In this document: piece by piece, positions 1 to 13,918 of the stretch | How positions within the stretch are numbered: position 1 is the first letter of the stretch | Layout of the letters: every line of letters starts with the position of its first letter | NCBI GenBank assembly: GCA_965644295.1 | Contig: CBFFRP010000083.1 | Location: 1-13,918 of the forward strand | From: Paraphysomonas bandaiensis | Lineage: Eukaryota > Protista > Chrysophyceae | Direction: 5' to 3' | Length of the DNA stretch: 13,918 nt | Made by a program: the position numbers and the translations under genes | The notes under the pieces: model-generated | Told to the model about the DNA's origin: nothing | What the model saw: the letters and a program-made list of their open reading frames with translations, nothing else | Database searches by the model: none

Positions 1-99
1 GTTGCACCTTGGTGCTTGCGGCGACGCACAAGCAGCTTTCGTAGCGTTAAATAGTAGGATAAAAGAGTTTGTATTGATTAGTTACGGGTAGTGGTCTAA
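1..99 (-). repeat. Dispersed ~99-bp repeat, copy A (inverted relative to copies B and C; may continue beyond the window start)
   Basis: Reverse complement of 1-99 aligns without gaps to 9341-9439 with 6 mismatches (93/99) by manual alignment. Contains the GCACC-NN-GGTGC mini-hairpin. Confidence 0.95.
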
Positions 100-381
100 C
101 TAGTATGACTAGCATTCTTCTAGCCACTAATTGATGCAAGGTCTCAACGCCTATTGCTAAATAATCAGACATTCACTACGACAGATTATAGTGCAAATGA
201 TTATTATCACAGATAACCTCTGATAAAACCAGTTAATAGCGCAATCGTTTACTATCACCTTGTGGCTTTTGATAGTACCTAAGGTAAATTACTTTGTATG
301 TTAAAAGTTCATCATGAAGCACAACAAATAAAATCACACATGTGTCTGAGGTTTACGAAATACGCTTTAGGTTATGTACAT

Positions 382-707
382 ATTGCGGTACTGAATGGCA
401 AAGACTTCTATACATATAAAATGGCGGAATTAGCTGAGCCCTCTACGGACATAGGCAAAAAATCGAAACTCGCGATGATATCAAGCAATTGTATATCAAT
501 TAGTATCCGAAAGGTGATGTTCTCTTTAAGGAGGTGGAAGCGATATATCGGTTAAGCTAGCTAAGGGTCGATCAAAGTTCATATGAGCTCGTTGACTCGA
601 ATATGGTGTGCCCCTACCCCAAATGTGGCATGAACGTCCATACTCAGGAAAATTGCTCAAATGAACGTTTTGGGAAGAGTCGTGGTGTCAGAAATAAACA
701 GGACTAG
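382..707 (+). mobile_element. Degenerate Ty1/Copia-like gag remnant
   Basis: IAVLNGKDFYTYKM (from 382) resembles the Copia Gag N-terminal 'L-x-G-x-N-Y/F-x-x-W-K' motif. A different frame gives CPYPKCGMNVHTQENC (609-656), a C-x4-C-x4-H-x4-C zinc knuckle followed by a basic tail. The two are separated by stops and a frame change. No pol or LTR pair seen. Confidence 0.5.
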
Positions 708-1041
708 TCGAAGGTATACGGTATACGGACAAATAGGAAAAGAGTCTCATAGCACAGCCTGCGAACACAGCTAAGAAAACAGAAGTTATATCAGTATAAG
801 ATCTAATTTCTGGTTGAGTATGGAGGCTCAAAATCGACGAATATATGTGGTCAAAAGATGTTTCTTGTAAGACAAAAGTCCAGACAGTTAGTTACCATAA
901 CATCTACAGCGCACAGTGAATACTAGATGCGTAAATTGAGAAGGAACCAACACTATTGAAGTGTAGGTCCACGCTCAACGTCGCATACCTCACAACAATA
1001 TGAATACGCACTTTCAGACCAACCACATTTACGTGAATTAC

Positions 1042-1061
1042 ATGTATATGTATATGTATAT
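1042..1061. repeat. (ATGTAT)3.3 microsatellite
   Basis: atgtatatgtatatgtatat read directly. Confidence 0.7.
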
Positions 1062-1222
1062 TACCACTACGCATATCATGTGAAGTGACAAGAAAAAACA
1101 ACACCTTAGACGAACAAAAAGCAGCAACTGTGATTCCACAGGCTTGAAAATACACCAAAACTGTCATAGTGAGACAGAAGCATGTGACGCGCTCATATTA
1201 GGAGCTCAGTAGAAATAACACG

Positions 1223-3270
1223 CTAGGAAGGAATCTTTTTTGCACGCGCCCTTCTTGCACGCGACCTATCCCTGTACTCGCGCAACCGCTCAGAGTCAAA
1301 CTTTGTGATAACTCCTCCAAGTTCTCCTGAGGGAGCGTACTGATGTCTTCTGATGTTCCTGTAGGAGGCAGTATCGGAAGGAACATCACCAGATTTTTTA
1401 CACTCGGGAGAAATACCGAATACGTAAGTCATTCCGATACTAGCTCGAGACTGATGTGCGGACTCTGCACTACTGTTGCAATCCGTAGTTATATTTTCTC
1501 GTGCTTTTACCAGCACGTCTTTGATAACTCTAAATATGAAAAAAATTACGGACAGTAATCGTATCAAATGTCCACTAACCCGCCAAAAATGGACTGCATA
1601 CTGTAAGATATGCGGTTAAGAGAGATGACTTTCTTAATGGCCCAAATCCATCGCCAACGTGCTTGCGAATAAACTCGCGGATTGACAGTTTCATTACAAG
1701 CAAACACGCGACTCCCAGAACTCACAGATATATGCTTCCCTGCCTCAGCACTATAGCTGAGTGCAGCTTCCACGAGGGAATGCGTGCCGTGCATAGACTT
1801 TGCGGAATCTTCATCCTCCTCCACAGGAAATCTGAATTTATATATGTCAGTGACATAAAAGCAGAACACAGCTGATATAGTACATAACCTAACTTACGTG
1901 TTCGTTCTCTTTATACTACTAGAACGAAGCAGGTTAGAAGATAGCTTGCCAGGAATGATATTATGGGGGCGGGGCAAAGTGAGGTTTTCCACAACACAGT
2001 TATCGCCTGCTATACAGCCGTCAACATATACAGTGACAGTATACATCTCACTGCCAGTTACAAATCAATGTACGAAAAACTTAACACGCACCTGATCGCC
2101 CAATAGTTAAAACTTTCTCTGATAGCCCACTATTAAATTTATAATCTGCATCCAACACGGCGACGAGGTAGTTCGCCGCAGCATCAATACGTTGTCTTGT
2201 CAACCGCTTCCTAAAACAATGTTACATTAGTACGCGATGTAAAACAATACTAATATGCAATATTGCGATGAATACTACAGCATTATATTGTTACACAATT
2301 GCGGCACGTACAAGAAAGTAAATCGAGGATGTCTATTCGAGGAATTGGACTCAGCAGAAATCCCGTTCTCACTGACTTCGAATATACGAGACGCCCTCAC
2401 ATATACTCTTTCGAGCTCAACATTTGCCTGCGTATCCACAGCAGAAACTTCAAAGCAATCAGCTTCTTTGTGATAAAAAACCGTAACCACTGCCCCTAGT
2501 TCACAACGCCAAAATACCATAGGTTGAGATAAAATCTCCTCCCCAGGTTTGCACACACCACCGGAGTGAATGCTGACGACAGATGTTGGGGAGATAGCAT
2601 TGGTGGGCGGGAGGGTTCTACACAGTGATATGTCATCTTTACTGCCTTGCCTGGCGAATGACCTTCTAAACTGTTGGGAAGTTGGTGATTTTAAGCCGGA
2701 TGATGCAGGGCTGGGCTTAATACTGGGCAGACTACTATCAGAATTGGGAGTGCAATCACTGCTCTCCACATCAATATACTGATCCATTAATATTGGATGT
2801 AGCTTTGTTTTGCCTTTAGAAATCATGCGACGCATGTAGAGTTTGTCTTCTTCCTCCTGTTTCTTTAGTTCTTCGTCGATATTGGCATTCCTGACATGTT
2901 CCAATAATACTAACGTGTTCATTCGATTATCACTGCTACCATTTCGGCCTGCCATCATACTACATTACCCAAATGTCATAATACTCATCATGTTATTACC
3001 TAAATGAACATCAATATCATCTCGACTAGATTGCTTTAAGAGTTGTCGTCTATTGTTAGAGACCACTTGAGAAACACGCAGTGGAGTACTCCTCTCTTTA
3101 TCTCGTCTTATAATCCCAATAGATTGTGTCTCAGTCAAATGAATATCATGTAATTCAGGAAGATTCTGTTGATATTCATTCTCTGATTGATGTGAAGGAT
3201 TATCGTCTATATGATATTTTCTTCCTGCTAGTGTCGTAGAGGCCTCATGTCGTGTATATCTCTTCCTCAT
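1223..3270 (-). CDS. Six-exon hypothetical protein, about 565 aa
   Basis: Manual model: exons 3270-3000, 2948-2312, 2210-2092, 2009-1898, 1831-1580, 1529-1223. All introns GT-AG and phase-compatible; total 1698 nt, open to TAG. Low-complexity Ser-rich N-half, a globular-looking beta-rich segment (MVFWRCELGAVVTVFYHKEADCFEVSAVD), and a basic amphipathic helix (ARWRWIWAIKKVISLNR). Confidence 0.8.
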
Positions 3271-3930
3271 AATGGATTAACACTGTGATAATATTTATCT
3301 TATTCTTACAAATGATAATAAAAAGATATTGTTAGCATATAAGAGGATTTAATGAATGATAATATGTATATATAGAGTGGGATGAGTGACTCTTTATGCA
3401 TCTCAGATCTGTTAAACAACAACCAAATTTAGAATCCATATAACAATTTTGTCTATTGATGTTTACAAAATTCCTGAAGATATTGTAAATTATTAGACTT
3501 TTCAGCTAAATTATCATGACTTTTCTTCTAAAAACTATGGTTTTTTAAGATAACTTTGTTCCCCCATATTCCCCGCAGGATTTCCCTTTTCCACAACATT
3601 GAGAAAAATCCCCCATTTACACATCAAAAGTTGGTGTATTTTTTTCTAATTGCAAGAATGTTCCTCAGGAACCATATTTGTATGGGTTTTTGGGTAAGAT
3701 GGTGTTGAGGTACAACACAATGATAGATAAACTATACAGAGCGCGTGTACGTATGATTATATAGAGAGATATGAGGGTTTAACATACAGATTAGCTCACC
3801 ATTACATTATCATTCATTGTAAAAGGAATCAGTTAATATTATCATATATACTCTTAAGTCATTGTATTTGTAGTATATTACATTGCTCTATAAGCATCTC
3901 TGTGATTAAATTAAAGGGTTATCCACTACA

Positions 3931-4560
3931 ATGGCAACATGTAAGGACTGTGACTGTGATAACTATCGAGAGGAACTTCTTGCGGCTTCAGATAAATTGG
4001 TAATCATCATATAATTATATAATATGATGATGTGATGTATTTCACAGATTACACCAGCCGGGAATTGTGCGAACTGTAATCATCCTCTTAATCGGCACCC
4101 GAGAACACCTGTTGCTGGACTCCCTACTGCTTCCGCCCCAGTCGAATGTAACCCGTCGATGGAAAAAGAGGGTGGTCAACCCAAGATTGTGATGGCATCC
4201 GCTATTAATATTTCAACACCCTCCGAACAGCCTGGCTACACAGAAAATATGCCTGTATACGATTCCTCAAGAGGTGGTTACGTTACTGGCACAGGAAGGG
4301 TCATGGGAAATACCACGGAAGGAGACTACAATGACTATGGCAGACGCGGAGTGGGCGTTAATTCAACAGTTGAAAGTCAGGGTGACATGGCATACGGTGG
4401 GGCTTTAGGAGCTCCGTACGGGGACCCCTACAGCGTGAGACGCACGCATGCTGGCAATGTTACTACTTCCTCCACAGGCTCTACTTCTGCGACATCCATA
4501 TCTATCACGGATATTAACGCCTCTTATGGTGACCCTTATAGTGTAAAAAGAATGACTTAG
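3931..4560 (+). CDS. Two-exon 193-aa protein with N-terminal Cys/His putative zinc-binding module and Gly/Tyr/Thr-rich tail
   Basis: Exon 3931-3999 (MATCKDCDCDNYREELLAASDKL), 48-nt GT-AG intron 4000-4047, exon 4048-4560 (ITPAGNCANCNHPLNRH...) in frame with ORF 4159-4560. Pattern C-x2-C-x-C ... C-x2-C-x-H-x4-H. Confidence 0.75.
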
Positions 4561-5045
4561 GGGTGCTTGATGCATTGATTCGCGGGGTTCTTGCGGGACT
4601 CAATTGTATCAATGAAATCTTCCTTTCACAGAATATATTGTTCCCTATGCCTATAACTATTCGTTAGGAAATTATTTATATTATTACTATTATTCAATGC
4701 ATAATAAATTCAAGTCCTAATAAGAACGGCGTAATCACTGCATGGTCACTTTTTGCTGGAGAATGTCGTATTCGTGTTCGGTAATACTAGCTGATCACGT
4801 ACTACAATTGTATCATCGGGTACAGACTCACAGATTCAACTATGAGTAAGTTTCGTTATATGTCCTTGCTTTAGTGCCAACAAATAATATTTTATATTTA
4901 CGCAAAATTGAATATATTACAAACTAATAAATAACGAATATGAAATCGTATTGAATATAAATACCAAAGTCGAGCTATACAGCTATACTACACGGAAGAA
5001 TCAGATCCAGTACACATGTACACATCATCTGATTTCAACCTAAAC

Positions 5046-6587
5046 CTAGTCATCAGATCTCACTTTCAAAACTGTCTTCTTTTTAACAGTGTAATCAGAG
5101 GTACCAGTATCTGACGAATCAATCTGCTGAACCTTTCGTTTCGACTTCCGGTTGCTCTGAGAAGTATCAACTGACGATTGGACCTCAGAAGTATAATATG
5201 TCTGACGTGATTCCGACTCTTCTTTTCCAACACCACTCATCTCATACCTTAGAGAACCTCTCATATATCAAGGGAAAAAACAATATAACACATTATATGA
5301 ACAGGTAAACAGCACAACACACACGTAGCACTTGTACAAAATTTCAAGGTCGTCGACCTGCTAGAGTATATTTCCGGTTTCATACTGTGCTGCTGTTCTG
5401 GTGTGTGATGTGGGACTTCATAATGCTGCATTATACCGAATTCTTCTTTCTCACTCTCTTGCGTGTCCATTTTATACCGCACCTTTTTAGTACTGGAAAT
5501 AGGAGTTGACAATTTCAGACCTTCAACAGTCGGGGTTCTATCTGCAGATCTATCTGGGGTAACGATCCTCTATAAATATAATAGTTATAAAAGATATGTG
5601 TAAGCAATGAGTATTGATTAGCTTTGAGAAGGATAGTGATATACTTTACTCATTTTGACGAGTAAATGTGAAATAAATGTAATCAAAGCATGGCTTAATC
5701 CCAGTTCGAATGATACGTTGATCAACTTCGAAAGACATACTAAAATCATAAATAACATTAATATTTACCCTCAGTATATCCAATAGCCCCTGTTGCTGGT
5801 ACTGTTCCATCTGAAGAGCCTTCACACAGCTCATTTCGTTTCCCACCATTTGTTCCTGATCTCGGGATACAACGTTCATATCACGTAGAATTAGTATCTC
5901 ATTCGCCATTCGAAATGGCAATAACACACCATCCAAACAGATTTCTAACAAGCTACTTGAAACAAAATCATTTTCTTCAAACATATTGTACAGGTATTAC
6001 CTCACAGACCCTTCTAAATTGAATACAATTTGGTCTTCAATCAGCGACAGTAACGCCTCGAATGCATCGTTGCGGATGAAAACACATACTTTACCAGCTT
6101 TACATATACGCGAAAGAATTAATCGATAAGAAACAATAGATATGACTCTATCAGTATTGTTGTAACAAGTTGTTTCTATGTTGGACACATCACTCATATC
6201 GATGCATTCTGGATGATTTACTGATGGCCCACTATCATCCTCACTTCCTTCTGATGAACTAGACGATGTAATACTGCCTGAAATGCTTCCTTCACTTTCT
6301 AAACTTTCAGGAGTATACTCTTCATCCGTACATATCGTTTGATCAAAGCCAGCTATACCAAATCTATAAGAGTTATTTGTCGCTATCAGGTGAACACAGT
6401 GGTTTAAGTCTTCGACGTTAATGATTGTACGGCAATGATGTTGTGCAATGATAGAACATAATGTGATACACTTCTTGAGTAAGTTATATATAGAATCCTT
6501 CAATAGCAGAACTGATGTGGAGTTTACATTGTAATAATGACATTTCATACATAAAGCAATTAGTTCAGAGTCTGTGGGATATTCCAT
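5046..6587 (-). CDS. Multi-exon protein with fused H4-like and H3-like histone folds and a low-complexity C-terminus
   Basis: Exon 6587-6001, 48-nt GT-AG intron 6000-5953, exon 5952-5769; probable further exons 5725-5645, 5569 onward and about 5260-5046 (start codon and 3' structure uncertain). 6578-6387 aligns ungapped to the H4 fold; 6158-6012 aligns ungapped to the H3 fold. Confidence 0.7.
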
Positions 6588-6873
6588 TCCTGAATCTTTC
6601 AATCAGTGGGTTATATTCTTCAATGGTGTTGTGTGCATCACTTAACAGTATAACTCACCTCAGAGGAATGACTATACGCCTATATCTAGATATTACAGTG
6701 AATATGATACATAGTCCCTTCTATAGTCCCTTCACTGCAGGAGTTTGTGACATTCGATTTGGAAGACCTCTTCAACATCATTGTTCTGGGCTCGCAAAAT
6801 ACCACTTTTCGCATACTTAAAATCTAATTTTCCTTTAAAAAGTAGGAAATAGTCCCAAAACTCGAAATCGAAA

Positions 6874-6895
6874 CCTAGATATCCGGATATCTAGG
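6874..6895. promoter_or_regulatory. Perfect 22-bp palindrome in a divergent intergenic region
   Basis: CCTAGATATCCGGATATCTAGG equals its own reverse complement. The palindrome is certain; a regulatory role is inferred only from position. Confidence 0.55.
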
Positions 6896-7117
6896 GACTG
6901 AAAATTGGACTTATTTATGAAGTGTGCAGTATTGTTTATTTTAAACCAATAGTTATTCTATTAATTGTATTACACACTTCTTATTGGTTTACTTCTTTTG
7001 AGCTGATCGAAGGTGCGTGTTGAATGTAATTGGAGTAATCATACTCCGGTACTGCTGAGAGACTATAAGTGAGACTGTACAGTAGCATCAGATATCCACA
7101 ACCATCCTATATATAAA

Positions 7118-9113
7118 ATGAACTGGCTTAATTGGGCTGTATTGATAACATGTGCCGATGAAACCTCACTCGAGGATCTTCAGCAGATAATCCAGAAAAC
7201 ACAAACCATATCCATATCAGAGAGACTCACAGAGATAACCTTTCAGGGCTATATTTTATTATCAAGAAAAGGAAAAGACTATCATCAATGCTGTATAGAT
7301 GGTCTCCTTAATCTTATTCAGACACCACTGCATGTAGAAGATAAGAGAATGTGTTTGGCGGCTATATACGAGATATGTGGAGATAGTCCGGAGGGTATAT
7401 TTTGCAATGTCCGTAACATGCTTCTACATGCAATTGAATATGTATACAATAATGCGGAAGTCAGTGAAGATTATTTATGCACAAGTCTTCAGATACTTGT
7501 ATGTTTTTAGTACACTTTCTATGTTGGCAATTGAGAATATTTAGGCACTATGCTTTACAAACTGCAATGAATCGACGTGTTTAAAAATTTTGTACTGGCC
7601 AATATCAACACTCTCCAGTATTTCATGTGAAGAACTTGCGGAAGAATTAAGGTTAGTGTCAATGATTTCGTCGTGGTAAGACTGACATGTGTCAGGTCCA
7701 CTGATAAAACACACCTGGTTAACCAAGGACCCAATCCATCATACTCGTGTATTTCAGGTACATAATATGTATTACACATTTGATATCACTGCTACGTGCA
7801 CAATGACTTCCTGTGAACAGCTTTTGTAAGTCAAAGTATGACTTCTGCGCTTACTTCTGTCCAGACTCTAGCCTACCGTATCATCGGATTGGTGGCAGTG
7901 TGTTCTTTCGGTACATTAGGAGAAAACTTTACCTCTATACTAATGAAGCGTGCAACCTTTTCATCCAATGAGTTTGATGATCCTGTTCGAACTGTTGTAG
8001 TTGCAATTCTATGGAATATATGCTGTGTATGTGGAAAAAATAGGATTGCAGAGAATATTGTCGAGAAAGACAGGGTCCTACTGAGTAGTCTGCACTGGAA
8101 AGTCGAAATGGAAAGGTCTATAGCAGTCATTGGGGCTTCTCAGGTGGTCGCATTAACCGTCATTTCGCCCTCTGTTTTGTTCATGATGGTAGGATTGTGT
8201 TTATCTCGTATATCCTTGTGTTAGTCTGACTGGAGGCGATGAAACAGGTGTATGAGCTGATTGGCAGCTTTTTTCTTCGCTCATCTGTCATGGGGAGCGT
8301 GAGAAAAATACTTGTAGCTAATTACCAAAAACGACAACCTTGTGATAAATTTTTACTCTCTAAGGGTAAACAATAGATTTCTATAGCTAGCAACCCTTGA
8401 CAGGTTGTATATGCAGCTGCTCGGGTGGCTGTCCTGTCTTCCCATGACAAATATGACTACAAAGGTATAAGTAAATGACTGCGCAATGTTGTAAAAGGCA
8501 TGGTCAAAGAGAAATTTTGATACCATGTGGGAATATAGTTATTTCAGAGGCTTTGGGTAAGTGGCATGAGAGAGATGCAGGTCAGGCCAGGCGGCTACTA
8601 ATGGAAGGTGTAAACGACGCAGGAGGAGTAATGGTAATATTATACCTGCATTGTTCACCCTATACTTTTCCCATGATTTATATTATATTATACCATTATG
8701 GACTATTGGATATATTTCAAATAATAACTTCGTCGTTTCATAGGATAACATTGTGTTACGAGTATTGTCGATTGAGATGGAAACATATTCCCTTTACTCA
8801 TTTCCTGCGGATTGCTTGACAGATGACGTCAAATCCTGCCTATTAATTTTGTTTTTTGGGATGATGAAACCGGTGCGTATCATGAAACTTCTAACGATTG
8901 AGCATTTTAAAATGTGATAGTATGTAACGCAAAGTAGTTTTTGTGCGTTTTATCATGGTACTGAATGTGGGATAGGTTTGTGGAGCAGACAATATGAAAT
9001 GTTTGCTGGAGAATCAAACCTATGAAGTGAAACAAAGTGTGCTGCAAAATGTAAGATATAACATTGCTTTGCTTCTCAAATAACGTATTTACCAGGCTAT
9101 TGAGCTATTTTAG
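7118..9113 (+). CDS. Ten-exon helical (HEAT-like) protein, about 445 aa, resembling the condensin CAP-G/Cnd3 C-terminal domain
   Basis: Manual model: 7118-7498, 7545-7651, 7696-7757, 7821-8188, 8248-8298, 8404-8464, 8548-8633, 8744-8872, 8976-9050, 9096-9113. All GT-AG and phase-consistent, 1338 nt. Segments VQTLAYRIIGLVAVCS, VRTVVVAILWNICCVCG and ERSIAVIGASQVV match in order the Cnd3-type helices as I recall them (VRELALKCLGLCCLLD, ALQALFDLLLVHG, VQAIAAEGLAKLL). The true start may lie upstream (possible intron 7013-7082). Gene existence is more certain than the family call. Confidence 0.6.
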
Positions 9114-9236
9114 CTAAAATGAGAAAGATGTATAGGTTCGTTGATAACTTTACTTACGTCGTAGTGAATGTCTTATTCTTAGTAATAGGTGTATAACAGA
9201 ACTAATGTAGCATCGCAATTTCACTAACTAGTGTTT

Positions 9237-9304
9237 AACTCTGATATCCTAATATTTAACGCTACGAAAGCTGCTTGTGAGTCACCGCAGGCACCAAGGT
9301 GCAA
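9237..9304 (+). repeat. Dispersed repeat, copy B (partial, tandem to copy C)
   Basis: 62/68 identical to the reverse complement of 2-69; offset 134 bp from copy C. Confidence 0.9.
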
Positions 9305-9340
9305 TAACTTTCGCTCTATCGCTCAAAGCAAACGCAGTAT

Positions 9341-9439
9341 TTAGACCTCTACCCGTAACTAATCAATACAAACTCTTTTATCCTACTATTTAACGCTATA
9401 GAAGATGCTTGTGCGTCGCCGCAAGCACCAAGGTGCGAC
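9341..9439 (+). repeat. Dispersed repeat, copy C
   Basis: 93/99 identical to the reverse complement of 1-99. Confidence 0.95.
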
Positions 9440-10338
9440 CACTTCCGTTCTTAGTGTGTGTTATGAGGCTCGCCATGATCGTGTGTCCTGGGACTCACCG
9501 GCGCGTGTGATCTGGAGGTCTCCCCTTGGGATGAGACTTCACTCGCTATATTATAGATGTGTATGTAAAGGACACGTTGTGCATCATCGTACAGCATTAC
9601 AAGTGAAAGCAGTGATCTAAGTCTACTACTACAACACTGGAACGCTTAAGACTACACATACATTGTGTGCAATTTGCATCGGGGACTGCCTTATGTACCT
9701 CATGGCAACCAGGGGAAACAGTACTATACCCTGCTGAGATTGGCAATCTGGTGGCCTTCCTTTAGGCATTGTGCCAAGTGGCTCGAAGGTATGTGGATGA
9801 AGGTCTTGCAAAAGGTTATGTGGATGAAGAAGCGTCGAAATCGACTCTTTTGCTGTCTTAGCCAGCGGTAGAGAGCACATGCAAGAGACGAAGAAGAGTT
9901 ACCATGTAATGTTCACATGTTCACACCGTTCCCGTACAGGATAGTCACTGAATGGTGTGAGATGACAGATACTTCGAAAAGTAGACATTTCTTGACCTTA
10001 CCATCATAAAGAATCGAATGTTATTACTTCATCACGTGAATGGTTTCTATGTTTCTATACCCTCAGTGTTTAGTGGTCATAATATTTTGTATCTTTGCTC
10101 CCCTGTTTTTTACAACCCATTTATGATTTTAACTAGTATGGTGCTGTAGTGAACGACCACTTTAACACTAGCAAATATTAGCACTGGTGAAGTATCCCAG
10201 CGAATAATAGCAGCCGAACTAGGCTTGACGTAGCACACAGCGACCCATATGCTGTACTAAGAGAACTAGAAAAAGAACTAACACATTATTAGACCTAAAG
10301 TACCATCTAATGCAAGTAGGGGCAATTAAACCAAGATA

Positions 10339-11538
10339 TCAGTAGTATATCGTCAAAGTGCGATGATGTGGTGGAATATCATCCTTCAATTTCTCGCCTA
10401 GTTGCCATAGTAACCAGTCTACTTCTATGACAATGATATCCCTGCCCCGTTTAACCAAAGCCTCTTTCAGCTTTTCTACGGCAATTATCGTACATGCTCT
10501 TATTTCTACCTCTTCCTCGCTTCCAAAAGGTATTAGAGTTTTTTGGTCAATTTTGCTGGCGAGGCTTGGGTCGTAAACGAGCACTCCCATTTGTCTTTAT
10601 GTACGCTGTTAGGAACAGAAACTAGCATTTAAATGATGCGCTGAGTTACCTTAAAATCTGGGGAACTCGATAGTCTGCAAACATTGTCAACTCTCCCATA
10701 TCTTTAAACTTGTAATATTGGGAGTTCCCGCCAGTCCCATTCGTCTCTTGTAATCTGCCACCATATGCCGCCCAGAGGTCCCCCACTAGTATCTGAGCAC
10801 GCTTGTAAAGGTGCACCAAGCGACCCTTGTATATAACAGTATCACGAAATCCCGGTAGATATCGAAGAATAAGCTCCACTAATTTCACTGCGCTTCCATC
10901 AGCTGCCACCACCATACCCTCTGCAAGGCCTGCAAATTCTGGGAAAGCAGAAACCATATCAGTCAGACCCGTAATACAAAAAGGTATCATCAATACAAAC
11001 CTTTCAGTAGAACTTCACCCATTTCTTTCAGGCGTAGTACGCGCTCAGATATGAGGGGTATAGTGTGATTAGGAAACCAAGATTGTAAAACATCCTGCAC
11101 AATATTTTTAATATATCACGATCAGAAGATATCGATTAGACTACCTCAGAAATGTTCGATAGACTCTCGGCACTAAATGCATTAGAATCCTTACAAAGCA
11201 CCTACAATGTCTTATTAAAAAATCAACGAGAACATATATAATATTACATTTTTGAGGCATGTTGCCAAGTGCTCATATTCCAAGTCATCAGGAGACGGCC
11301 AAAAACAGAAGTTCAGAGCATCTAATACAAATATATACTGACAAGTCATAGGTCCATTAGGAACATCTTCACAATAATGCCATCCTTCAGCATCCCATGC
11401 CACTTGACTCTTATCACCAATAGTGCTCACATCCATCTCTTGTGCTACACGATCTATTGCAGCGGCATCGATGCGAACAAATGATGCTTCTTCACATACA
11501 ATATTACAAGATCTCTTCACCTCAAGTAGTGGGTTCAT
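10339..11538 (-). CDS. QNG1: Queuosine 5'-phosphate N-glycosylase/hydrolase (queuosine salvage protein, DUF2419/C9orf64 family), 328 aa
   Basis: Family motifs QYIFVLDALNFCFWP, YKRAQILVGDLW, LTMFADYRVPQILR, EEVEIRAC, VDWLLWQLGE and terminal PHHRTLTIYY. Exons 11538-11248, 11201-11145, 11094-11001, 10938-10650, 10594-10339 (987 nt, in frame). Confidence 0.96.
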
Positions 11539-11880
11539 ATTCAATTACTTTTATGGTTATATGTCGATTGTAATGCCTAGTAGAATCTATGAGTGTCTAT
11601 TGTAAAGGAGGGAACGAATGGATGACTTTGGCAGGCCATTGATTTTTTATGAATTCGGGATTTTTATTTTATAAAAAACAGTGATTTTATCATAATCTCA
11701 TACAGAGTTTATAAAAGAGTCTATTTTTTGTACCTACAAAAAGGTTTTTTGTCAAATAATTTTTGCACAGCGTTAACATGTTAATATATGACAGCATTCG
11801 CATGTAAAATAAATTTCGTAAAAATAATTTTCTGAAAAAGTGTTACATACTGCTGGAGTCTGTTACCTGCTACATACTAA

Positions 11881-11944
11881 TATGGTGTATATGGTATAGG
11901 TATACTCTGTACTTCTAGCTATACCTATATATGGATACACCATA
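11881..11944. repeat. Interrupted inverted repeat (hairpin) between QNG1 and PHAF1
   Basis: TATGGTGTAT (11881-11890) pairs with ATACACCATA (11935-11944); TATAGGTATA (11895-11904) pairs with TATACCTATA (11920-11929); 15-nt loop. Confidence 0.7.
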
Positions 11945-12034
11945 GTACAGCATTAATAATTCTTTCTTTCATATATTCCTCATTCAAACACTAGCATACG
12001 ATACACTAGGAACTAATACCCGATTAAACTCATA

Positions 12035-13629
12035 ATGAACTCTTATGATGAACCATTTCAGATTAATTCAGGTGTCGGATTAAGTAAATTTAAACTAGGG
12101 ATGAGTATTAACGAGACGATTGAATATCTGACTAAAGAGTTCCCTCGAGTGCATTATGACCTCACGATAGGTGATTACACTACACAAGAAAGTTCAGAGT
12201 TACAATTATGCATACCATGCTGGGGTGTACGTTTGCGTTATCTTCCCCTGTCACAGAAATTATTTATCATTGATATCTATGACCTTAAGTGCACTGCATT
12301 CGAAATGAATGACACTGTTATCCATGATACAAAGCATAAAACTACACTTAAATCTTTACAGAATACTTTAGGTCCTCTTTTTCCAGGTAGAATTAGTATG
12401 GTATGCTACAAGGATTATCTTAATGCTGTACATTGATCCAGGTAAATTCGTCGAAGACGGGCTGTATTTGCTTCAATTCGACGGAATAAGTTTGTTGTTT
12501 TCGATCCCAACTCAGTTTCAGTCGATATACGAGAATGGAAATAAAATTCCTACACTTCTTCCCGATGATTCTTCTGCTCTCTTGAAACGAGTCTATGTTC
12601 ACCCCAGTGATCTGGAAATGGAAGGTGCAGACAAATACTCTGATGATTTGCCATTGGTAGCAGAAATAGTATTCAAACGCCGGTCGAATTCTCCGGATAG
12701 ACCATTGTCTCATGTCCATTTCAAGCTACCTGGCTCACAAAAAGATGGTTTGGTGACACTTGGCATGTCAGCGCAAGATGTCATATCTAATCTTGGTAAC
12801 CCGGATTTTGCTAGCTCAGCATCCCAGCGAAGCGACTCATACTCCCAGCGTTACGAGTATTATCGACTAGGTTAGCTCATATGCAGGATGTGATTTATTT
12901 GTTATTTACATTACATACCTGTTTGTAGGTTTGGACTTGTACTTTTCAAAGAAACGGCACCTTGTGTACCGCATTGTAATGCGTACTAATTTCCCTGGCC
13001 ACCAAGATTTCAGCAGATATGACAGATGTGCATTTCGAATAAATGATGAGGAAACAGCTGATCGATTAATATGCGCTAGGAGTCAGTGCAGTATTTTATC
13101 TAGTGTTGCAAGCGTTCCTGCAGTGGAAGGTCAGGGTACAACAGAGAAGAAGCGCGAAGCATCTGAAGACAAGACTTGGAAAGCAGCTTCAGGGAAAAAA
13201 TCGGACATCAGTGATTTGGAAGACGATTCGGAAAAAACACAGTCGGCCTCGGAGACAATGTCTGGTAACAGTTCAGACTCTGGAATTGGGATTGATGTGG
13301 CGGGCAGTATCACACCGGCCTCACACTGGTCCAGAACTGCGGTCAGAACAGAAATTTTGTTGTATTTTCGTAACGCATGTACAGGATCTGTTGTCTCAAT
13401 GGTTTGCTGGTAGCGGACAGACTGTGCCAGCGGCCATTAAACCAACCCCTGCAGGGTGTCCGTTTGCTCCAACGAAATTGTATGGCTATCCCCATGTAAG
13501 TTGTTGTGTCTGTCTGGAGGTAAGATACTTTTACGAGTGTATCAGATCAATGCGGTTGTGGAGGTATCGGATGGTGGATGGATTGTCTCAGTGACAATAC
13601 TAGATCCAGATATGTTGATAGACAACTAG
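12035..13629 (+). CDS. PHAF1: Phagosome assembly factor 1 homolog (C16orf70/UPF0183 family), about 462 aa
   Basis: Family motifs FKLGMSINE, LGPLFPG, LGMSAQDVISNLGNP, YYRLGLDLYF, MRTNFPGHQDFSRYDRCAF, PFAPTKLYGYP, VEVSDGGWIVSVTI. Exons 12035-12386, 12442-12870, 12929-13341, 13385-13495, 13546-13629 (1389 nt, all GT-AG). Confidence 0.92.
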
Positions 13630-13665
13630 GCTGTCGGACTGTTTATATCCAGATATGTTGATAGA
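13604..13665 (+). repeat. Perfect 19-bp direct repeat straddling the PHAF1 stop codon
   Basis: ATCCAGATATGTTGATAGA at 13604-13622 and 13647-13665 with a 24-nt spacer. Confidence 0.85.
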
Positions 13666-13918
13666 TAAGGAGGGTGGTACGCCAACTGTATGTATGAAAA
13701 TTATGAAATATTACTCTTTTAAGTGCAGCAGTATCTGTGGTCGTGAAGCCACAAAACTCCTTGAGAGACTACGTTTGCGAGCGACGAGTGTGTCCATATA
13801 ATGAAATGTAGAACTAGATTCGCAATGTGATTATTGTAATTAAATATACTCTTGTTTTACAACTCTACTTTTTACCTTACAAAAAATGAGCAGGGAGTTG
13901 TGTCTCTGTCTCGTAGAA

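Follow-up and report, generated by a model that had tools for sequence, protein, structure and literature searches.

To our knowledge, single-chain pairs of histone folds are few, and those known in eukaryotic cells are SPT3, Sos and ABTB-type proteins. Doublets encoded by viruses are central to the debate on the origin of the nucleosome. The arrangement in which H4 precedes H3 within one chain has been reported as exclusive to the Marseilleviridae (bioRxiv 10.1101/2021.11.30.470311), and the Melbournevirus doublets combine a connector of about 20 amino acids (aa) with conserved DNA-binding arginines (PMC8357426). Among cellular proteins, SPT3 was described in a survey of TFIID and SAGA evolution as 'seemingly lost' except in opisthokonts and a few other species (PMC6672047). 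Here we analyze a 13,918-nucleotide (nt) stretch of DNA from the chrysophyte Paraphysomonas bandaiensis (GenBank assembly GCA_965644295.1, contig CBFFRP010000083.1, positions 1 to 13,918 of the forward strand; hereafter the window), in which an initial annotation, made from the sequence alone, had proposed an intron-containing gene for a fused, divergent H4-H3 histone doublet, either derived from a virus and domesticated or representing a lineage-specific fused histone-fold protein. We find a gene, single-copy in the 62.6-megabase (Mb) genome, that encodes an acidic protein of 394 aa, in which two helical domains probably pack against one another in a handshake like that of histones, forming an intramolecular pseudo-dimer. 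The second of the two proposed alternatives, a lineage-specific fused histone-fold protein, is the one that fits best.

The gene is organized as follows, with domains 1 and 2 abbreviated as D1 and D2:

5046..6587, minus strand: whole coding region from ATG to stop, with four exons and a 394-aa product, as read from the spliced contigs of runs X1-X3

6001..6587, minus strand: exon 1, encoding aa 1-195 plus 2 nt and comprising D1, the acidic linker and the first part of D2

5953..6000, minus strand: intron 1, 48 nt, GT..AG, with the 5952/6001 joint in X1 contig record 4

5769..5952, minus strand: exon 2, encoding aa 196-257, with the rest of D2 (the presumed end of alpha2, loop 2 (L2) with 'LPF', and alpha3 starting at 'NE'), followed by a C-terminal helix that ends in LLDILR

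5570..5768, minus strand: intron 2, 199 nt, GT..AG, with its joint in three runs

5358..5569, minus strand: exon 3, the start of a disordered tail rich in Ser/Thr-Pro

5248..5357, minus strand: intron 3, 110 nt, GT..AG, with its joint in X1 and X2

5046..5247, minus strand: exon 4, the rest of the tail, which contains the basic clusters RKSKRK and KKK, followed by the stop codon (5048-5046)

To establish this model, contigs of four public runs were mapped over positions 4300-8300. Runs X1-X3 behave as transcriptomes, since they carry GT..AG joints both in the gene and in its neighbor and show zero depth over the intergenic interval 6712-6979, while X5 is DNA. The 201-aa open frame at 6602-5997 (minus strand) and its ATG at 6587 are as claimed in the initial annotation; an in-frame TGA lies upstream at 6605-6603, the RNA contig of the gene begins at 6591, and the N-terminal MEYP is common to the window protein and its closest relative, L011. 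The proposed 48-nt GT..AG intron at 6000-5953 was also borne out by a 989-nt X1 contig that spans 6591-6001, 5952-5769 and 5569-5356 and is spliced at 6001/5952. Reading across this junction rejoins the family-conserved 'NLEGSxSL...LPF...NE', which provides independent support for the splice. Intron 1 is found at the same position and in the same phase in the relative L009, and there is none at that point in L011 and L003. The counterpart of the intron 2 donor is a GT placed immediately after the final helix of the family, which ends in LLxxL[KRQ], and it is found right after the homologous residues in L003, L011 and L007. Since the coding sequence runs from 6587 to 5049, with the stop codon at 5048-5046, the extent of 5862-6587 initially given for the gene lies within it but covers only part of a longer, four-exon gene. 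Record 3 of X1 reads through intron 3 unspliced, and both forms are present in the RNA-like contigs; if the intron were retained, the frame would stop early and yield a 359-aa product. Run X5 represents a slightly different strain or allele, which differs in the exons at 6 sites (4 synonymous, 2 non-synonymous) and in the 110 nt of intron 3 at 5, the pattern that would be expected under purifying selection, albeit with small numbers. Over 4300-8300 as a whole, the X5 DNA contig differs at ~1% of positions, and its indels (13, 12, 7 and 1 nt) occur only in introns or intergenic sequence.

When 1.84 billion representatives were searched exhaustively with phmmer, four true relatives of the window protein (P0001, P0002, P0004 and P0005, E 5e-7 to 4e-4) were identified, together with one further match that is a repeat artefact. 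After the contigs of the relatives were spliced by hand for comparison, all five proteins were seen to follow one plan, with an N-terminal D1, an acidic Ser/Asp/Glu linker, D2 and a final helix, and with the D2 landmarks IS..S, AF, NLEG-x-x-SL and LPF conserved across the family. The five sequences found so far, on diatom-like contigs, make up a small and fast-evolving family: D1 of the window protein is only 39% identical to that of L011, its closest relative, versus 36-83% identity, exon by exon, between the gene adjoining the L011 family member and the orthologue of that gene, which lies on a different contig of the genome studied here. Other searches were silent. A word-seeded homologue search with the window protein found none, family-profile searches returned only members already known, and single-protein searches of metagenome and viral contigs gave no relatives; Pfam assigned no family to the window exons, bar an irrelevant match at 0.25, and phmmer of the window protein against the PDB gave only a repeat-driven pentatricopeptide repeat (PPR) artefact.

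The N-terminal domain has the following layout:

6372..6575, minus strand: D1, histone fold, aa 5-72, with alpha1 at 6-15, alpha2 at 23-50, an L2 carrying R53-T54 and the D60 clamp, and alpha3 at 58-71

When the family profile was compared with all PDB sequences, 136 matches were obtained, and the best 60 of the 136 are all histone-fold proteins; the matches listed include H2B, the archaeal HPhA (E 0.01, positions 11-66), H4, CENP-S and TAF6. The weak Pfam matches of the relatives (Bromo_TP at 0.005, TFIID-31kDa, Histone and CENP-T_C) are mostly to histone-fold families, every language-model neighbor carrying a family name belongs to a histone-fold family, and the Joint Genome Institute (JGI) pipeline annotates P0001 as 'histone H3/H4'. 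In shuffle tests on gapless windows against the histones of this same genome, D1 of the relatives reached z values of up to 8.0 (H2B), 7.3 (H4) and 6.3 (H3), always in the alpha2-L2-alpha3 register, and D1 did not resemble the TAF13 and TAF11 encoded in this genome (z ~0.6 against TAF13). D1 retains the L2 motif R-x-T-I-x-x-x-D with the spacing seen in H2B, H4 and HPhA, is modeled by AlphaFold2 with a predicted local distance difference test score (pLDDT) of 73-93, and as a single domain fits TAF9, TAF12, H4, HPhA and CENP-S at 1.3-2.2 Å root-mean-square deviation (rmsd). Hence D1 belongs to clan CL0012: it is a true histone fold, similar in type to H4, H2B and archaeal histones. Its specific likeness to H4, on which the initial annotation had based the first half of the doublet, is less clear-cut. 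The 7 identities in 64 gapless positions were reproduced against the genome's own H4 and the register is right, with four relatives falling on one diagonal (offset 26, z 3.5-7.3), but the match is not above chance for the window protein alone, its BLOSUM62 score of -5 being reached by 73 of 1000 shuffles and its BLASTP E being 6.7. Similarly, the 'GIAGF' that had been said to recall the TLYGF of H4 corresponds to an [IVAS]-G-[FY] motif in four of the five members, but its distance from alpha3 is 7 residues greater than in H4 and it falls in a region of low confidence.

D1 is followed by a segment for which the initial description, an acidic Ser/Glu linker of about 60 aa, proved accurate:

6168..6371, minus strand: acidic linker rich in Ser, Glu and Asp, aa 73-140, predicted to be disordered, with pLDDT <50 for aa 73-125

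Its 64 residues from aa 77 to 140 have an isoelectric point (pI) of 4.05 and include 15 D/E, 0 K/R and 21 S/T. The acidity of the linker is kept in all five members, in each of which the core has a pI of 4.5-5.0. D1 begins at residue 5, leaving no N-terminal tail, and its loop 1 (L1) has no basic residue. At the other end of the protein, the C-terminal tail contains four Ser/Thr-Pro sites, one of them T-P-x-R, along with the basic clusters RKSKRK and KKK, a combination that may suggest nuclear import and phosphoregulation.

No sequence-level match to a histone fold was obtained for the second domain that is conserved in the family. Its first part is encoded in exon 1:

6001..6167, minus strand: first part of D2, aa 141-195, with alpha1 at 151-165, an L1 strand at 170-172 and alpha2 at 173-192, AlphaFold2 pLDDT 84-91

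As a whole, D2 extends over aa ~144-232. The exon-1 product (residues 1-195) was modeled by AlphaFold2 with the family alignment, giving a pLDDT of 69 and a predicted template modeling score (pTM) of 0.64, with both cores at 84-93, a disordered linker and a short helix (134-140) preceding alpha1 of D2. A VIA-align search with this model, independent of Foldseek and covering 48,161 PDB representatives, returned single-chain histone-fold doublets for all of the first nine matches, each spanning residues 1-195:

7n8n_A, Melbournevirus doublet: Z 11.8 over 129 aa at 2.8 Å

H2A-H2B fusion: Z 9.9

Thermus 1wwi: Z 9.8

Melbournevirus mini doublet: Z 9.7

Human SUPT3H: Z 9.5

Yeast Spt3: Z 9.1

Methanopyrus HMk (1f1e): Z 8.4

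Sos: Z 7.8

Aquifex 1r4v: Z 6.6

Chain A of 7n8n is presumably the H4-H3 doublet, given that its residue numbers reach at least 215 and that BFVD has an entry of 216 aa. Relative L003, folded separately and with its full D2, retrieved the same list of doublets, again headed by 7n8n_A (Z 12.2), and viral, archaeal and bacterial doublets were likewise retrieved by Foldseek from the PDB, from BFVD and from the ESM Atlas. Two models place D2 in a handshake with D1, and the two halves are predicted to pair within one chain as a histone-fold pseudo-dimer.

Several observations weigh against this prediction. The models were built from alignments of no more than 6-7 sequences, the one for L003 is of low quality (pLDDT 52) and, according to the search tool's own note, helical models can reach Z ~13 by chance. 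In both models the part of D2 that pairs with D1 is alpha1-L1(strand)-alpha2, and the L2-alpha3 region, encoded in exon 2, has no confident model. Profiles of both halves of D2 drew nothing relevant from the PDB, only insignificant matches to poxvirus topoisomerase (vaccinia/variola) and AsbF; hhalign comparisons of D2 with the genome's own H3, H4, H2A, H2B, TAF11 and TAF13, and of D1 with D2, gave nothing; and the language-model (Atlas) neighbors of one relative's D2 are HEAT/importin-repeat fragments, with scores of 0.91-0.95. These results raise the alternative that only D1 is a histone fold, that D2 is an unrelated helical segment, such as HEAT-like hairpins or a coiled coil, and that D1 pairs with a separate protein, the handshake being a modeling artefact. 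Besides the lack of sequence signal in D2, the shallow alignments and the nature of the Atlas neighbors, such a reading would accommodate the poor conservation of the exon-2 part (11-25% identity). A split-domain complex prediction of D1 (aa 1-76) with D2 (aa 126-195), run without alignments or controls, gave no verdict (score 0.28 versus a mark of 0.34) and weighs on neither side. Nevertheless, two members folded separately adopt the same doublet geometry and retrieve the same doublet matches, the pLDDT over alpha1-L1-alpha2 of D2 is high, the pTM is attained despite the disordered linker, and the lengths of the D2 elements (alpha1 of 15 aa, L1 of 7 aa with a strand, and a long alpha2) fit a histone fold. 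On balance, we regard an artefactual handshake as rather unlikely and favor the intramolecular pseudo-dimer.

If the two domains do pair in one chain, the question arises of where the doublet comes from. The protein could be a true H4-H3-derived histone doublet that originated when host H4 and H3 became fused, or through exchange with a giant virus resembling the Marseilleviridae, and that subsequently diverged and was domesticated. The predicted order of its halves is that of such a doublet, an H4/H2B-class half followed by one with the extra N-terminal helix of H3; D1 keeps the histone-type R-x-T...D loop; 7n8n_A tops the lists of both models by about 2 Z units over other doublets; and in BFVD the Melbournevirus H4-H3 doublet is matched with a probability of 0.99, as opposed to 0.28 for the mini H2B-H2A doublet. 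For the second half, the alignment to H3 in the initial annotation was reproduced against the genome's own H3 (10 identities in 49 positions), on the best diagonal and at a score reached by only 5 of 1000 shuffles. It is, however, null in BLASTP and gives z <0 in four relatives, and because of this we take the similarity between D2 of the window protein and H3 to be due to chance or lineage-specific. The further resemblance claimed between the C-terminal EILILRDMNVVSR and H3 does not hold, at only 2 identities in 13 positions.

The remaining evidence speaks against histone identity. At E <=10, Pfam Histone (PF00125) does not recognize the window protein, and one relative matches it at 0.063. 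D1 compares as well with H2B and H3 as with H4, and the H3 signal of D2 recurs in none of the relatives. The core is acidic rather than basic in all five members, of the DNA-binding arginines only the one in R53-T54 of L2 is kept, and the acidic core, the missing tail and the 64-aa acidic linker are unlike the viral doublets. An H4-H3 histone identity is not supported on these grounds: what stands of the fused doublet initially proposed is the predicted pairing of two histone-fold-type halves in one chain, the H4/H2B-class half first, and not their identity as H4 and H3. A viral source fares no better. No relatives were found in IMG/VR, the spliceosomal introns occupy positions conserved in relatives, the gene has host neighbors and a single copy, and the base composition of the window is unremarkable; the proposed domestication of a viral gene is not upheld, and a recent viral insertion was rejected on the introns, neighbors and composition. 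A true H4-H3-derived doublet is hence improbable. The same holds for the broader proposal that a cellular H4-then-H3 doublet, sharing ancestry with those of the Marseilleviridae as donor or recipient or arising from an independent host fusion, was remodeled into an acidic, non-nucleosomal chromatin factor; slim as its chances appear, it would make this the first cellular eukaryote with a doublet of the H4-H3 type.

A different origin is suggested by the presence of SUPT3H and Spt3 among the top structural matches. The gene could encode a very divergent version of the SPT3/SUPT3H that is missing from the host lineage, a SAGA subunit with TAF13-like and then TAF11-like folds that binds TBP. The architecture is alike (300-400 aa in which a long linker separates a fold right at the N-terminus from another one) and the genome yielded no canonical SPT3, the PF02269 search giving only TAF13, in keeping with the reported loss of SPT3 outside opisthokonts (PMC6672047). 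Against this, none of the 7 family sequences matches PF02269 at E <=10, the genome-wide search placing TAF13 (63 bits) elsewhere than at this locus; no family member matches PF04719 at E <=10, and genome-wide this model finds only the TAF11 locus. Furthermore, D1 is unlike the genome's own TAF13 and D2 unlike TAF11, whereas D1 does match core histones, and the structural Z values lie below that of the viral doublet. Searches of the genome for ADA1 (PF12767) and SPT20 (PF12090) gave no signal, a weak argument in that they had no positive control. We thus consider it quite unlikely that the protein is a diverged SPT3, and retain a lineage-specific doublet as the preferred reading. An ordinary SPT3, TAF13, TAF11, TAF8 or TAF10 was rejected outright, given that the locus matches none of the models and that the genome has separate genes for TAF13, TAF11, a TAF8-like protein (Bromo_TP, C413) and TAF10 (C285). 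PF07524 (Bromo_TP) is not matched above its gathering score, the best member being L003 (E 0.005, 17.3 bits versus a cut-off of 24.6). An orthologue of an ordinary SPT3 or TAF, or a gene lacking a spliced transcript, would have spoken against the initial annotation; we observed neither.

Two side observations emerged from these searches. A weak PF02269 match at L002:1368-1695 (G000:C254) corresponds to a histone-fold gene of the NC2/NF-Y type split by an intron, and not to SPT3, and the TAF13 (L001:1789-2448) and TAF11 (L026:1863-3081) loci are flanked by long microsatellite-like repeats that read 'MYVC' for hundreds of codons.

These results lead us to propose the following model for the lineage-specific doublet. 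D1 would contribute a histone fold of the H4/H2B/archaeal type that keeps the L2 'R-x-T-I...D' clamp, and D2, a sequence-orphan helix-strand-helix, would act as its partner fold, as placed by the models. The two would be joined by the ~65-aa acidic, Ser-rich, disordered linker, and D2 would be followed by a helix and by a disordered tail that carries Ser/Thr-Pro sites along with basic clusters resembling nuclear localization signals. Because its core is acidic and it has no tail, the protein most likely does not wrap DNA in the manner of a nucleosomal histone. It would instead be a nuclear protein-binding module, probably comparable to SPT3 and TAF pairs or to acidic histone-binding proteins, that may use its histone-fold surfaces and acidic linker to bind histones, other pairs of histone folds or partners of basic character. 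Its role is probably that of a protein-binding scaffold in chromatin or transcription.

The genomic setting of the gene is that of an ordinary host locus. The other genes of the window include a queuosine salvage protein gene at 10646-11544 (minus strand; PF10343, E 9e-29; at least 2 exons) and open frames at 12035-12875 (plus strand) that resemble PHAF1 (phagosome assembly factor 1; E 3e-5, just below the Pfam gathering score), and several silicon-transporter genes are present in the same genome. No synteny was found between the window and the contigs of the relatives. Upstream, the gene faces a divergently transcribed neighbor:

6592..7054, no strand assigned: intergenic region shared with the divergent neighbor; RNA contigs end at 6591 and resume at 7055-7080, with no RNA depth over 6712-6979

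This region of ~460 base pairs is a candidate bidirectional promoter. The neighbor itself (7055-8300, plus strand) has at least 4 short GT..AG introns (46, 44, 63 and 59 nt) supported by spliced contigs in three runs, and two of its exons have no Pfam match at E <=0.1. On the other side, an open reading frame at 4159-4560 (plus strand) encodes 133 aa rich in Gly, Tyr and Ser, in which the motif 'YGDPYSV[RK]R' recurs, and has no Pfam match. It lies under RNA contigs with a word depth of ~1850-3300, compared with ~5-30 at neighboring genes, and appears to be very highly expressed.

Comparison with described systems places the protein among, yet apart from, several groups. D1 has the alpha2-L2-alpha3 register of H4, H2B and archaeal HMf-type histones as well as their 'A-x-H-x-x-R-x-T-I-x-x-x-D' motif, and the L003 model fits H4 at 1.3-1.7 Å rmsd; unlike core and archaeal histones, D1 has no Pfam-level match, is tailless and neutral to acidic, and is fused to a partner domain. 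HMk (1f1e), the DUF1931 proteins of Thermus and Aquifex (1wwi, 1r4v), Sos (1q9c) and engineered H2B-H2A fusions have the same handshake geometry as predicted here (Z 6.6-9.9), but they belong to other lineages, have short linkers and show no sequence relationship. SPT3/SUPT3H is also a cellular eukaryotic protein of similar length and not a DNA-wrapping histone, in which a long linker connects an N-terminal fold to its pairing partner, a second fold further along the chain, as the models predict for the window protein. It differs in that the window protein gives no PF02269 or PF04719 signal, in that D1 is nearer to H4, H2B and archaeal histones than to TAF13, in the strongly acidic character of the linker and in that no SAGA core partners were detected in the host genome. 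The gene is a concrete candidate for the role of SPT3 in the host lineage.

The best structural match is the Melbournevirus MEL_368 doublet (7n8n), likewise one chain with an H4/H2B-class fold first and a partner with an extra N-terminal helix second. The viral protein is basic, has a ~20-aa connector and forms nucleosome-like particles (PMC8357426), whereas the window protein is acidic and tailless, carries an acidic linker of 64 aa, is the product of a host gene with introns and has no detectable sequence similarity to it. For annotation, the case illustrates that a fold to which Pfam and single-sequence searches are blind can be recovered by a five-sequence profile and structure prediction. 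With its handshake as predicted, the family represents a previously unrecognized, lineage-restricted member of the known class of single-chain histone-fold doublets. As an unannotated cellular doublet family nearest in shape to the viral H4-H3 doublet, it bears on the question of how easily fusions of this kind form and take on other functions.

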